From: Dimorphilus gyrociliatus
Taxonomy: Eukaryota > Animalia > Annelida
NCBI GenBank assembly: GCA_904063045.1
Contig: CAJFCJ010000001.1
Span: 806,001-870,000 of the forward strand
Reading direction: 5' to 3'
Length of the DNA: 64,000 nucleotides
Shown here: one piece after another, positions 9,784-36,316 of the stretch
Layout: each line of letters begins with the position of its first letter
Position numbering within the stretch: position 1 is the first letter of the stretch
The notes under the pieces: model-generated
Told to the model about the DNA's origin: nothing
Databases searched by the model: none
What the model saw: the letters and a program-made list of their open reading frames with translations, nothing else
Translations under genes and position numbers: made by a program

Positions 9784-10392
9784 TTAACAATCTCACCTAT
9801 TCATTCTCATATTTAGGATCATCATTCGAAAAAATGTAGATTATATTTTGTACTTAGACACTCGCAAAGTTATTTTTTAAGTTTAATTGAATTTGTTATG
9901 GTAGTCATTTAAAATGCCAGCGTGCTAATACAATGTGAAATATATAATTCTTCAAATATTTCGATAAATGTCGTGGTTCGGATAATAAAGAAGTGTGGTA
10001 CAGTGTAACCGCAAAACTTCAAGGCCTACTAGTATTTATAGGCTGACCGATGCTGACCTCTCACCAATCGCTAAATAATTGCAGCTGAACCGACGAAACC
10101 GGTCATTAAGTATGGAAACTTATCCGTTTCGAATACCTGCCCTTTAGCGATCGATTTTTCGAGAGGAACTGGGAACCATTCAAATACGAAGGGCCAATCA
10201 GCTTTCGTTACCTCTCATTGTATGTGAATTGTTGTAGGATAAGCTTCCACTCGTTAATCACTTCGTTTTTAGAGGAAAAACCGAACGATCGACGAATTTA
10301 ATTAATAAATTGAATTGGATTCGTTGTCTAACATTCTTACTGGTTTAGAAAAAATGCTTTATTTTAGATAGTGGATCTCCCATGAAAGCATA

Positions 10393-13300
10393 ATGAGAGG
10401 ATTGTTAATCGTCGTCTGTCTCTTCCAGCCTCTTCTCGCTTATGCACCTTTCTTTTGCAGAAACATGAGGCAAATGTATACTCAAAAAGGGTTTCCAATG
10501 CATCATATAGAAAATCGACCGAAAACACGTGAGTAATTGTTAAATATTTTTGTCAAAATTAAAGTAGTCATTAAATCCTTCGTTTACACGACTGTCAAAT
10601 TAAGTCTAATTACATCCGTTGACCTAGTTTTAAGTTTGATTGATTTATTATCTATATATAAAAGTCTATTCACCTCTTATCACTGACTGTTGACAAGCAT
10701 TCAACAGATTTGAACAGATTATCTGGTCAGATTGATAGCTTTATAGCGTTGTAGAAAAAAAATTCAACTTTACACTTTTTCCCATTCAATCTTTTAGAAG
10801 GAGCTAGGCACAAAAGCAACTTCAATCATTCCTTTATTTAACAAAAGCCCCGGTGCTTCACTTAGACATTCTTCAGATCGTTTATTGGTCTAGCATAGTT
10901 TAATTAGAAGCTTTTTTCTTTCCAAACAGTGTCGAATAGTATTTGCCGTTTGCGAGACACATGTTGCAGTAATGAAGTTGAGAAGAATCTACAAAAGTTG
11001 AGTGTAAATGATACGGGAAGGATGTTTAATAATTATATGTCTACATACAAGAACGAATTTGTCTCGAAGCATGCGCAGATTGACAGTAAGTATGAATCTT
11101 GAACACAATTAATCAAATCGCGGCATAAACACTGTATTCTACTGCTTTTTGTAAGATATATTGATTTATACTTTTTCGAGTTATTTAACCAAATTCATAC
11201 TATATTGCCCAACCAACTTTTTGCCATAAGCTATTAATGAATAAGTATGTAATTGCGAAGAAATCACGTGATATTTGATATCAGGTAGTGCTTGAATTTC
11301 TATACCCACAATAGAGTCATTTACGACACTGATTGCACGTCATTCATTTTCTTGTCACATAGAGAAAAAAATAAAAACTAGACTAAAGACGTTTTAAAAC
11401 TGTTGGTAATAAAATCTAGGCATGATTAATACCAGCTTCCTACCAAACTCAACGTTGCAGTGTTTATCCGCAAAGAAATCTTTTCGCCTGTCCGACTTTC
11501 TAGTGTACATTATTCGTCGTTTTTTTTAGGTTTGTTCAATAAACTACACAAGAATACGATGGATGTGACCCATAAGTATCTCGACATAGTTTATGGTCTC
11601 CTCTATGTAAAACATAAAGATATCTTTTTTGATTTTTTGTCGGATCTATTATACTATTATAAAAACGAAGGAAAAGAATCTTTAAAAGACAGAATTGAAA
11701 GATTCTTTGACACCCTTTACGTCGCTCTCTTCCATATAAAATTTAATGGTGGCACCTTTAAACCGAATGGTTTTCCCGAGAAGTTCAATAATTGCGTTAA
11801 AAGAACTAGAAAAACAATAAAACCTTTTAAGAAAGAGCAAGAAGAAGCTGTTATTAGATTGTTGGAAAAATTCATGTATCCTTCCAAAACTTTTGTTCAG
11901 GCCCTGAGAGTTGGCCGAGATTTTATTCTGGACGTAATAAAGGTAATTATATCTTACTAAATATAGAATTTTTCGGCATTGTTTGCTTAAACGCGTTAAA
12001 GAAAAATAAGTTCGATATGTCAACCTGTTTTATACTTATAGGTAACGATCTTAATGGCATATTTGTAAAACTTTTTTTCACTAAAAAACAAGTCAATCAG
12101 AGAGGGAAACATTGATTTATAGCCTTTAAGAGTACTGTATAGTCAATACTGTACGTATGCAGCTACATAGCATTTAGAGCTATATAATGGAAAAAAAAGC
12201 TCTAGGAGGAAAGAAATTAGTTTTTTAACCTCTTTAGTTAAAACTTGTTTATGTCCAACTGTTCTTATTAAACTTTTTTGTTCAATAATTGACTTTAATG
12301 ATTTATTGAATGTTGAACACCGAAAGAATTCTTTTTTTTTTGTAATTTATTATTAGTTTTGGTAAATATAGTAATCATTTCAATAGAAATCAGATAAATA
12401 ATGATTCATTGTAGGGATAATGTAAATATCTACAAATATTAAGTACTAATATAGTAAAAATGCCTATTGAACAGAACGCTAAATTGTACTTTAATAAATC
12501 ATTTTAATAAATAATGTCAGAACCCATTTTGTTGTTTATGACGATTTGCTCTTATCGTGTTGGTTAATTAGGAAAATGCGCGTCATTCCCTTTCACTATT
12601 GTCAGAAATATCTTGCGTATTTATCTATGGAATGCACGCGCTTATCTGATTACATATAGCATGTAGTGGACGTTTACAAAATAATTGCCCTCTCTTCGCT
12701 ATGAATTATTCATGTATTCTATATGTTTTACTTCTTCATAGGAACCATTTGGAAAAGACTGCAGCAATTCATTAACTCGACTAGAATACTGCAAATATTG
12801 TCGGGATGAATCGAATGCGAAACCCTGTTATACTTATTGTTCAGCTGTAATGAACGGATGTTTCACATTACATCATAAATTACAATTACATTGGAATGAA
12901 TACGCAAGTAAGCAGGCTTTTTCCTTCATAAAACGCGACCTTATATTTGTCTACAGCTAAGGTGCTTGATAAGTCATCCCCTTATCTCTCTTATACGCTG
13001 ACTTGATTGTATATGATTATCTTCCGGTGTATTTTATATAGGATAAATATATTATATATAGCACGCGCCAAAGCATTGGTAGAAATTTTATATATAAATA
13101 TACTGTACTATGAATTTATGGGGATTTTTCTTTTTTTCTTTCACTCTCTCTTTCGCTCTCTCTTTTTCTTTCCCCCTTATTCCTTCCTATACCTTATACA
13201 AAGTACTTTTTGTCTGCTTTGTTTACGTTGGCTAAAAGAGATGCGGCTAAAACGAACGTAAACGGCCGATCAACATTGGAAAATACCACGACATTTATCT

Positions 13301-33351: not shown

Positions 33352-33930
33352 ATGGATGAAAATCAAGAAGATCCGGAAATATTTGCTAAAAGACAAAAAA
33401 TGCATACGTCTTTCTTGAATAAATTAAACGAATATAAAATGGAAGTTGGATCTGATATTCAACAAAGGTTAACAGATGAATTATTATCGGGGCTGGCAAG
33501 TTCACTTCTCAATGATTCTGTTTTTGAGATATGCAGAACTTTAAGGGAGGTTCAACATTTGGAGGAGAAAAATTTATTTTCTTCAAGAGTAAAAATGGTA
33601 AATGAACAGGTTGTTTCAAAACAGGAAGTTATAAGTAAGCATCGGGAGAAAATTCAGTCTTGTTTATCTGAACCAGAAAACCTTCAAGCCGTTCAGGCGC
33701 AATGTGAAAAAGAAGCTAAAGAGTTTGATTTAAAATGTGAAGATGAATTGAAGAAGAAAGATATGCGCATAATAATGGAACTAGATCAAAAAGTTATGGA
33801 TCAACAAGTAACTCTGGAAAAGCTTGGTATTCCAGGCTTTTATGTAACAAATAAGGAAATTGAAATGCAAGTTCAGATGTGCTTATTAGAATTTATTTTA
33901 AAACTTCAAAACTCTCAGGAAAATGATTAA
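33352..33930 (+). CDS. DGCR6: DGCR6 / gonadal (gdl) family protein, intronless CDS
   Basis: QQRLTDELLSGLASSLLNDSVFEI..L.EVQHLEEKNL; ELDQKVMDQQVTLEKLGIPGFYVTN...QMCLLEFILKL. Confidence 0.92.
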   Translation: MDENQEDPEIFAKRQKMHTSFLNKLNEYKMEVGSDIQQRLTDELLSGLASSLLNDSVFEICRTLREVQHLEEKNLFSSRVKMVNEQVVSKQEVISKHREKIQSCLSEPENLQAVQAQCEKEAKEFDLKCEDELKKKDMRIIMELDQKVMDQQVTLEKLGIPGFYVTNKEIEMQVQMCLLEFILKLQNSQEND

Positions 33931-34330
33931 CAAATCACAAAATACGAAAATCACTTGTCAAAAAAATCTGGTCTTAATAGAAGTTTGAAAAAGTAGGATT
34001 ATTTCTATATTGAGAGTAATCCTTCGAATTTAGTTCGTAATATTAAAAAAAAACAATAAGTCGATTTCTTCTATTTTTATACATTTGCTAACAGTTTTTT
34101 CTTAGTGGATAATTTTTTGAAAGATTTTTCCTGCCATTTATGAACACTGAAAAGTTCTTCCTACGATGCATATTTCATTTTGTTTTCTCTAATATTTTTC
34201 AATTGTTAATTTTTAATAAATGTTCGTTTGAAAAAATTTTAAGCTGGTTCCTAGAGACAATTTTGCTTTTCTCTGACATTGTAAATTATCGAAAAGGTAA
34301 TTTAGAATTTTAAGGAATTTGCTTTTGAAA

Positions 34331-35645
34331 ATGGACCATGATATTGAGAATTATTATAGGACTGCAGAAAAACTTTGCAGACATGCAGGAGAGGTATAAT
34401 TTCTTAGCAAAATATAAGATTTGCGGCTTTTGAAGCAATGTTTATTTTCGTTATATTATCGCTCAATAGGTAATTAAAGAGGCCTTTTACCAAGACAAGC
34501 TTGTTGAACAAAAATCAAGTATTGGTGATTTAGTAACCGAAACCGATAAGAAAGTAGAGGATATGGTCGTCCGTAAGCTCTTGGAAATTTTTCCTTCTCA
34601 TGAGTATGCTTTTCCCAAAGTTTCATAAAAGTACAATTTCACAAGTATACTGCTTCATTTAGATTCATTGGCGAAGAGAATACTGCAGCCGGTAAAGAAA
34701 ATATATTGTCTGATAAACCTACTTGGGTTATTGATCCAATTGATGGAACTAATAATTTTGTTCACAGGTGACACACTTTATTAAATTTTATAGATGTTTT
34801 TTTTTAATTTGCCTCTTACTTATATAGATTTCCTTTTGTCTGTATTTCTGTCGGTCTACTCATAGAAAAAAAACCGGTCGTGGGAATTATCTATAATCCG
34901 ATTACAGATGAATATTATCATGCTATTAAAGGACAAGGAGCCTTTTGCAATGGAGAGCGAATACACGTCAAAAAGACTGAGGGTAAATAGGTTTACTATT
35001 AACGAATAAAATTTCGCTTTTTTATACAGTATTTAATTGCAATTTAAAAACAGAATTGAAGGATGCTCTCCTCTGTACTGAATTTGGATCTAGCAGAGAT
35101 AAGGACATACTGGATGTTAAATTGGGTAATATGAGAAAGATAATAGATTATGTTCATGGGTAATTATTCGTATAAACTGCTTTATTATAACTCTATCTCA
35201 ACAACGCATCGATTGAATAATTATAGGATACGAACCTTAGGGTCAGCTGCTTTACATATGTGCTTAGTGGCCAAAGCAGCTTCCGACGTTTATTTTAGTT
35301 TCGGAATACATATTTGGGACTTTACTGCAGGTTATCTGATTGTTCAAGAAGCTGGTGGTTGCGTTATTGACACAGCAGGTTTTCATATTTTACTTGCGAA
35401 AAAACTTGAATCTCCTAACAAACTATCAACATTAATAGTTATTTTTCGAATATTTAATCTTATAAAAAATCATACAACTGATAGTTGTGTAGAACTAAAT
35501 TTTTAATTTAGGTGAATCCACACTAAAAACAAACGCTATGAATGACTAGGTAATTAACTTAATATAAACTTAATATATATCGTTATTCGAAAAGTGACAA
35601 CGTTTGTCTGTCAATTTTTTTTTTGGGTATTCTATGATTTGCACT

Positions 35646-35684
<39 letters not shown>

Positions 35685-36316
35685 ATATTTATATACATAT
35701 ATATGTATATAAGAGACACTCTTTGTAACATATTTTAAACTTCTTAGAGAAGGATTACTCTACTGTTTGCTTTCATTCGTTGCCGAAACAATTTATAAAC
35801 AAACCAGATAATTAAATTAATCATTACTTGATAATTAATCCTACGTCCCTGTATATTATCAATACAGAATAAGAATGCTTGGTTCGGCTGCAATGAATAT
35901 TACGCAAATAGCTAGAGGAAGCGTAGATGCCTATTTTGAATACGGTACACATTGCTGGGATATCGCAGCTGGGGTAATAATACTGACTGAAGCTGGTGGA
36001 TGTGCTCTCGATACAGCAGGTGGTTGCATCTTCCTTTCTGATTAATAAGTGCTTCAAAAAACCTGGACAAATTTTCTTTTTTTATTTTAGAAATAATCAC
36101 ACTTTTTGAAATTCACTTTCATTTTTTCTACTAACTCTTAATCTTTAAGGAATTAATTATTTAAAATCCTAAATGCATAACTATTAGTAAAAATAATAGT
36201 ATATTTCAGGAGGTGAAGTGGACCTTATGAGTCGCAGAATTTTGTGCGCTGGTACGCCTCAATTGGCTCATGCTCTTTCAAAGATGTTGAAGCAAATCGA
36301 ACTAGAACGTGACTAA
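34331..36316 (+). CDS. IMPA1: Inositol monophosphatase (IMPase) with two alternative copies of exon 6
   Basis: [35 protein letters not shown]...WD, DLMSRR motifs; 7-exon path with consistent splice phases. Confidence 0.95.
35227..35378 (+). other. IMPA1: IMPase alternative exon 6a (152 nt, phase 2 to 1)
   Basis: ttatag|G ATA CGA...ACA GCA G|gttttc encodes [50 protein letters not shown]. Confidence 0.88.
35868..36019 (+). other. IMPA1: IMPase alternative exon 6b (152 nt, phase 2 to 1)
   Basis: aatacag|A ATA AGA...ACA GCA G|gtggtt encodes [50 protein letters not shown]. Confidence 0.88.

Follow-up and report, generated by a model that had tools for sequence, protein, structure and literature searches.

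The annelid Dimorphilus gyrociliatus has an inositol monophosphatase (IMPase) gene in which two tandem exons, here named cassettes 6a and 6b, are used in a mutually exclusive way. The reaction catalysed by IMPase concludes both the synthesis and the recycling of inositol. The enzyme is also the classic target of lithium, and each gene is usually taken to give one form of it. The gene described here lies within a stretch of 64,000 nucleotides (contig CAJFCJ010000001.1, positions 806,001 to 870,000 of the forward strand, GenBank assembly GCA_904063045.1), which we call the window and to which all coordinates refer unless another locus is named. Both alternative forms were found in spliced contigs that match the window, and the swap would give two isozymes differing in the range of sugar phosphates that they accept, a reading to which we assign a probability of about 0.75.

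Two mutually exclusive cassettes in one gene

The gene is compact, with seven exons between positions 34331 and 36316 of the + strand, and every exon border follows the AG-exon-GT pattern. The coding sequence starts with the ATG of exon 1 (34331..34393, 21 codons followed by a GT donor) and continues through exon 2 (34470..34603, with AG and GT borders), exon 3 (34663..34767), which carries the metal-binding WxIDPIDGT motif, exon 4 (34828..34982) and exon 5 (35054..35159), the last constant exon ahead of the choice. Cassettes 6a (35227..35378) and 6b (35868..36019) follow on the same strand, separated by an intron of 489 nt (35379..35867), and the last exon, exon 7 (36210..36316), ends with the stop codon at 36314-36316. 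The matches of the exon peptides to the PF00459 profile run consecutively, from positions 19-64 in exon 2 through 66-100 in exon 3 and 102-151 in exon 4 to 190-238, which 6a and 6b match alike (57.6 and 63.3 bits, respectively). The IMPase motif set is complete, with the DPIDGT-type motif in exon 3 and GSAA, WD and EAGG in each of the cassettes. The best PDB matches of this IMPase are IMPA1 and IMPA2, and its closest full-length relatives are annelid IMPases with about 53% identity. A second IMPase gene was not found in the window by tblastn.

An earlier prediction, made from the letters of this DNA, had proposed that both cassettes are 152 nt long and share their phase, with 2 nt of a codon in and 1 nt out, and the sequence agrees with it in borders, lengths and phase. 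It had also held that each cassette completes an intact IMPase and that taking both or neither shifts the frame. The sequence bears this out, and the isoform with 6a and the isoform with 6b both have an open frame of 273 aa. Any other combination breaks the frame because 152 is not a multiple of 3: joining 6a to 6b places a stop at the second codon of 6b, ahead of the last junction, and omitting both ends the frame at the second full codon of exon 7, giving a 189-aa product without Asp220 (residues are numbered here as in the human enzyme).

The expression of both forms could be followed in public data, where one index search led to two runs, X1 and X2. Run X2 consists of Logan contigs that match the window at 99% or better; its library type is unrecorded, and we take it to be cDNA because it is spliced at every intron covered. 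One of its contigs comprises exons 2-5, including the joint 34603>34663 and those on either side of exons 3 and 4, and it is followed by two alternative contigs of 205 nt and then by a common exon-7 contig. The first of the alternative contigs contains the last 29 nt of exon 5, cassette 6a and the first 26 nt of exon 7, with a word depth of 417, and the second contains 6b between the same flanks, with a word depth of 812; the 6a:6b ratio in word depth is about 1:2, 6a representing about one third. This pattern is the bubble expected of two isoforms, in which donor 35159 is joined to either 35227 or 35868 and the acceptor of exon 7 takes both 35378 and 36019. In fact, the four junctions that had been predicted (35159>35227, 35378>36210, 35159>35868 and 36019>36210) are all present in X2, and the 6a>6b joint (35378>35868), which had been predicted to be absent, was not seen in its contigs, nor was a joint between exon 5 and exon 7. 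These contigs show that 6a and 6b are used in a mutually exclusive manner. Run X1 is a coral metatranscriptome that carries the exon 1-2 and exon 3-4 joints only. Its contigs over 34283-34958 are spliced and at least 99% identical to the window, indicating that the coral sample was inhabited by the worm or by a very close relative of it.

The translated exons show that exclusivity is guarded, at the very least, by frame incompatibility. The form that includes both cassettes is a candidate for nonsense-mediated decay (NMD) because its premature stop precedes the last junction, and the same logic of frame incompatibility has been found for many exon pairs of C. elegans, including that of ttx-7 (PMC4165533). 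Other mechanisms were also considered. Steric hindrance, which applies to introns shorter than about 50-60 nt, is ruled out in the worm by the 489 nt between 6a and 6b. Incompatibility between U2 and U12 splice sites was discarded as well, given that none of the donors (GTAATTAT, GTTTTCAT and GTGGTTGC) is like the U12 donor RTATCCTT and that all acceptors end in AG. Pairing between introns of the docking/selector type, as in Dscam or 14-3-3zeta, did not stand out in this single species, the best duplexes among the three introns having z values of 0.23, 0.82 and -1.92 against 200 dinucleotide shuffles; the introns of other annelids are too diverged for a conservation comparison of pairing elements. 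Inverted repeats in the introns are dominated by a (TA)n tract. This tract is a microsatellite at 35648-35712, with an imperfect palindromic extension, that lies midway along the intron separating the cassettes, and no evidence for a role of it in splicing was seen.

What the swap changes

Cassettes 6a and 6b have 57% identity in DNA and share 26 of their 50 residues (52%), as anticipated by the original prediction, according to which about half of the residues differ. Their codons divide into 11 that are identical, 15 with synonymous differences and 24 with non-synonymous ones, 50 in all. The resemblance between the two is not due to chance, and exactly two copies (95.1 and 87.9 bits) were detected when the six frames of the window were searched with a cassette hidden Markov model (HMM). 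Both are the aligned counterpart of residues 190-239 of human IMPA1, an alignment that upholds the placement previously claimed for residues 213, 218 and 220 and for the GSAA and EAGG motifs. Cassette position 24 is equivalent to Glu213 and has Glu in 6b and Ser in 6a; position 29 is equivalent to Cys218 and has Cys in 6b and Ile in 6a; and position 31 is equivalent to Asp220, which is present in both, as are the G-S-A-A turn, the Trp219-Asp220 pair and EAGG. Cassette 6a has, in addition, His199.

Several of these residues have been assigned functions in other IMPases. Glu213 of the human enzyme forms hydrogen bonds with the C3 and C4 hydroxyls of inositol and, together with Asp93, provides the only side-chain specificity contacts; in a family alignment, Glu or Gln at 213 is found in enzymes that act specifically on inositol 1-phosphate, and Asp, His, Ser or Thr in enzymes that have dual specificity or are fructose bisphosphatases (FBPases) (PMC2080633). 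Cys218 is the sole cysteine near the active site and its change to Ala (C218A) lowers inhibition by ebselen (PMC7531247), Asp220 binds Mg-II (PMC4954947), and strand b10 and the b10-a7 and a7-b11 loops are listed in the dimer interface (PMC2080633).

Taking these assignments together, we propose that two tandem-duplicated exons would allow one IMPase gene to make two isozymes that differ only at the equivalent of human residues 190-239. The swapped stretch comprises the strand and loops mapped to the dimer interface, the G-S-A-A turn that binds phosphate, residue 213, which reads the sugar, the segment 217-220 including the metal ligand Asp220, and the EAGG turn. The 6b isoform, with Glu213 and Cys218, would be the canonical form specific for inositol phosphate. 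The 6a isoform, with Ser213, His199 and Ile218, would retain only one of the two side chains that contact the inositol ring and probably has a relaxed or different sugar-phosphate range, perhaps together with other thiol sensitivity and other dimer contacts. Judging from the residues involved, a switch in substrate range is the likeliest function of the swap. A relaxed or shifted range of monophosphates, not an FBPase activity, would be expected for 6a because the b9-a6 loop is encoded by a constant exon, and for the same reason fructose bisphosphate is not an obvious 6a substrate. Furthermore, the change of Cys218 to Ile may alter thiol sensitivity, and dimer preferences could differ, as the cassette holds strand b10 and the loops flanking helix a7. 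Splicing would in this way give invertebrates what vertebrates obtain from two paralogues, IMPA1 (Glu) and IMPA2 (Gln).

Distribution and age of the cassettes

We searched 1.8 billion representative proteins with the 6a peptide and afterwards used a profile from the window exon peptides aligned on full-length hits. The original prediction had suggested looking for the duplicate in the IMPA genes of lophotrochozoans and arthropods, and it was found there as a pair in annelids and as tandem cassettes in crustaceans, while Owenia (locus L003), Lineus (L004) and Lingula (L005) have one cassette, of the Glu type. In Paralvinella palmiformis (L006), a cassette with Thr213 (a-type) and then one with Glu213 (b-type) are located between exon 5 and exon 7, and a Thr213 a-type followed by a Glu213 b-type is also found in a siboglinid-like contig of 554 kb from the ENA metagenome assembly ERZ25073254 (L001). 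The cassette HMM found no extra or decayed cassettes in the window, Owenia, Lineus or Lingula. Over-long gene models in which both cassettes are read in exist for P. palmiformis (361 aa), Lamellibrachia satsuma (358 aa) and the springtail Allacma fusca (337 aa), and the protein models P0153 and P0154 support an ordered pair in other annelids. The order is the same in Paralvinella, Lamellibrachia and L001, with the type having Ser/Thr213 and His199 first and the Glu213 type second. Moreover, the a-type isoform is made in another annelid, for which independent evidence comes from P0159, the complete 279-aa product of a tubeworm transcript contig, with an a-type cassette identical to that of Lamellibrachia; the Ridgeia model P0175 is of the b-type, and P0159 and P0175 differ almost only in the cassette.

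A region-scored search with the Paralvinella a-type cassette yielded 10 candidates only and has little bearing on the distribution. Further 6a-like hits form a distinct set of single-exon fragments from metagenome contigs, and among fragments P0009, P0013, P0015 and P0016 some a-types have Tyr or Ser in place of His217 besides having Ser213. For the proteins P0001, P0162, P0177 and P0214 no gene-product record was found. Contig L001 looks like a vestimentiferan tubeworm genome contig, to judge from its b-type cassette, which is 88% identical to those of Ridgeia and Lamellibrachia. A second metagenome contig, L002 (JGI metagenome 3300026546), has the same exon 5 and a-type peptides as the P. 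palmiformis locus L006, and metagenome assemblies such as those of L001 and L002 contain animal DNA.

With respect to age, Dimorphilus 6a shares 64-72% of its residues with the other annelid a-types, compared with 52% with its own 6b, and the a-types form one group in 90% of the bootstrap trees. Among the genomic copies, the proportion of synonymous differences (pS) is 0.64-0.87, which means saturation, and the proportion of non-synonymous differences (pN) amounts to 0.19-0.21 in the a-types and to 0.24-0.31 in the b-types. By these measures both cassettes are constrained, the a-type at least as strongly, and the duplication is accordingly older than the divergence between Dimorphilus and the terebellids and siboglinids. 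In terms of annelid phylogeny, it presumably took place before or at the base of Pleistoannelida, and Owenia either branched earlier or lost a copy. The residues specific to the a-type are His199, His211 (Tyr in Dimorphilus), Ser/Thr213 and Ile/Val218, and the combination of His199 with Ser/Thr213 is present in all eight annelid a-types and in none of the 28 Glu-types. The original prediction would have been contradicted by an exon that is unused or unconstrained; expression was observed for both exons, and purifying selection acts on each of them across annelids.

Similar arrangements are present in gene models from other phyla. Two tandem cassettes were found in the models of Hyalella azteca (KAA0193768) and Armadillidium vulgare (RXG71254), and RefSeq contains isoform pairs (named X1/X2 there) of equal length that differ only in the cassette, residue 213 being Glu versus Gln in Branchiostoma lanceolatum and Glu versus His in Penaeus japonicus and in Macrobrachium rosenbergii. 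Isoforms of the Thr/Ser type occur in lobster, spiny lobster and crayfish (extra isoforms of Homarus, Panulirus, Procambarus and Cherax). These crustacean and amphioxus isoforms are automatic annotations, and the literature searched yielded no paper about them. The decapod and amphioxus pairs resemble the worm in that the swap is limited to the equivalent of human residues 190-239, Glu213 is found in one form and the cassettes are in genomic tandem. Penaeus (L008) also has the Glu type last, although it differs from the worm in having three cassettes, a His199/Gly213 type and a His213 type preceding the Glu type. This upstream third cassette of P. japonicus with His199 and Gly213 (7252-7401 of L008) is absent from the two P. 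japonicus isoforms retrieved.

In amphioxus (L007) the two cassettes extend over 9905-10244 of the locus, with the Glu type first and the Gln type second, which is the reverse of the protostome order, and they are separated by about 40 nt whereas those of the worm are 489 nt apart. A spacing of this size would be expected to be too short to splice out, which would result in steric mutual exclusivity there. Right after the second cassette of B. lanceolatum, at 10254-10508, there is a tandem array of short units in which one frame repeats the cassette end (GGVVWDTT-like), as if the 3' end of the exon had been amplified into the intron.

The T/S-type cassettes of lobster and crayfish are like annelid 6a in having His199 together with Ser/Thr213, a combination found in all six malacostracan T/S-type cassettes, and a tree of 50 columns groups the annelid a-types with the malacostracan T/S types (support 93/86). 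However, an annelid-only origin is not rejected, with a p-AU (approximately unbiased) value of 0.225, and the cross-phylum group dissolves without columns 10, 24, 29 and 36. From these alignments, deep homology and convergence of the annelid and crustacean cassettes are both possible. We advance only tentatively, as a somewhat doubtful idea, that the cassette with His199 and Ser/Thr213 could be a single ancient module of the annelid-malacostracan ancestor, encoding a distinct sugar-phosphate phosphatase activity hidden as an IMPase splice isoform. If this were true, an unrecognised second enzyme would exist in many invertebrates, and the recurrent change of residue 213 in animals (Glu, Gln, His, Ser/Thr and Gly) by exon or gene duplication would mark a repeated partitioning of the IMPase substrate range.

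Further variation was observed among the retrieved proteins. Copy 1 of Hyalella and P0112 have Phe or Tyr for His217. In addition, P0003, P0052, P0073 and similar sequences form a cassette class with His213 (YYHIG motif), one of them being placed beside IMPA1 in the tree. From its sequence context this class looks vertebrate, probably from fish, in which case a form with His213 would have arisen by gene duplication beside the Glu (IMPA1) and Gln (IMPA2) forms.

Alternative explanations and known systems

A function other than a change in substrate range has to be considered for the swap. The two isoforms could be equal in catalytic specificity, and the cassettes could differ instead in dimer partner or stability, in redox or thiol sensitivity (Cys218 versus Ile), in metal or lithium affinity, or in tissue-specific splicing after subfunctionalisation. 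In favour of this possibility, the cassette has the listed elements of the dimer interface and the only cysteine close to the active site, neither version has lost a metal ligand or the phosphate-binding turn, and IMPases are already promiscuous, so that one lost hydrogen bond may matter little. However, the most consistent change of the annelid a-types, shared with the crustacean look-alikes, is at residue 213, which is, with Asp93, one of the two side chains that read the ring, and we regard equal specificity as rather unlikely. A different view would be that the 6a isoform, loosely similar to IMPA2, has weak activity or a regulatory role and acts as a subunit mainly through mixed dimers with the 6b isoform. 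The activity of IMPA2 is low, 6a is without Glu213, both isoforms are found in one sample at comparable word depth and the cassette touches the dimer interface, all of which would suit such a role. Nevertheless, the constraint on the a-types is no weaker than that on the b-types (pN 0.19-0.21 against 0.24-0.31), and Asp220, Trp219, the G-S-A-A turn and EAGG are all retained in them, in line with a functional catalytic site. A mainly regulatory 6a is for these reasons quite improbable. Finally, one of the cassettes might be a decaying or spuriously spliced duplicate devoid of function, which is conceivable as a general possibility, the evidence from the species being one run. This explanation is hardly credible in view of the two intact frames, which score 88-95 bits against the cassette HMM, the share of about one third of the word depth that corresponds to 6a, the identity of 64-72% among a-types across annelids despite saturated synonymous sites, and the full a-type mRNA product of the tubeworm.

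Isozymes with differing sugar-phosphate range are therefore the explanation that we prefer, and several points weigh against it. Expression in the worm is documented by one run in the form of assembled contigs, from which rare forms are dropped, and double inclusion or skipping at a low level is possible; likewise, the 1:2 ratio is a word-depth figure only and a rough guide. A catalytic difference of the a-type isoforms is predicted from sequence comparison, and the rule that relates residue 213 to specificity was drawn from an alignment of mostly microbial enzymes. It has also been described that fructose bisphosphate is excluded mainly by the b9-a6 loop, which is outside the cassette (PMC2080633). 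The assignment to the dimer interface is a published list of elements mapped onto the cassette and not a measured contact. Lastly, Dimorphilus 6b is fast-evolving, with 51-58% identity to other b-types, and its grouping with them leans mainly on Glu213/Cys218 and on exon order.

Some known systems are close to the one described here. The original prediction had mentioned two splice forms of the C. elegans IMPase gene ttx-7 and had asked if they are homologous to the worm pair. It was right in that mutually exclusive exons 5a/5b near the 3' end have been validated for ttx-7 (Kuroyanagi et al. 2014; PMC4165533), where they are classed as non-homologous. Like the Dimorphilus cassettes, they belong to an IMPase gene, are exclusive and are each out of frame alone (3n+1 in ttx-7), but they measure 121 and 112 nt and have 17% aa identity, in contrast with two cassettes of 152 nt that are 52% identical. 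The NMD isoforms of ttx-7 were slightly increased ('Partially') in the smg-2 mutant (PMC4165533), and no text on the structure of the ttx-7 isoforms was found in the literature searched. Vertebrate IMPA1 and IMPA2 share one fold and differ at 213 (Glu versus Gln), the position that the worm toggles; unlike the worm isoforms, they come from two genes whose products diverge from end to end and not by a swap of 50 residues, and the alternative residue in the worm is Ser instead of Gln. The dual-specificity IMPase/FBPase enzymes of bacteria and archaea coincide with 6a in having Asp, His, Ser or Thr at the human 213 position, but they have a shortened b9-a6 loop, with room for a second phosphate (PMC2080633), whereas the loop of the worm is in a constant exon. 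Tandem exclusive exons of other enzymes, such as 6a/6b of C. elegans coq-2 (PMC4165533) and several human events (PMC8373072, PMC9741552), are homologous neighbours that agree in length and phase. Each transcript takes one of them, and they are often ancient and affect functional sites, as in the worm, although they occur in other genes.

Tandem mutually exclusive exons are a well-known device and the mechanism is not new. Regarding the IMPase gene itself, no paper on a cassette switch or on its link to residue 213 was found in the literature searched. The novelty is lowered because the same cassette is alternatively spliced in public crustacean and amphioxus gene models; parts of the system are already present, unremarked, in RefSeq (crustaceans and amphioxus) and in the C. 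elegans splicing survey, and the finding is only partly new. Its interest lies in that annelids produce two IMPase versions per gene by means of a cassette that contains the sugar-reading residue, a metal ligand and part of the dimer interface. To judge from public gene models, a comparable arrangement is in use in decapods, amphipods, isopods, a springtail and amphioxus. This provides a ready-made natural experiment on residue 213 and its partners 199, 211 and 218, it suggests a further phosphatase activity that may be present in many invertebrates, and it is a clean case from an enzyme to be placed with the few ancient tandem-exon substitutions at active sites.

Outside the IMPase gene, a single-exon open reading frame of 192 aa is located about 400 nt upstream of its start, at 33352-33930 on the + strand, and encodes a DGCR6-family protein (PF07324, E = 1.3e-49).

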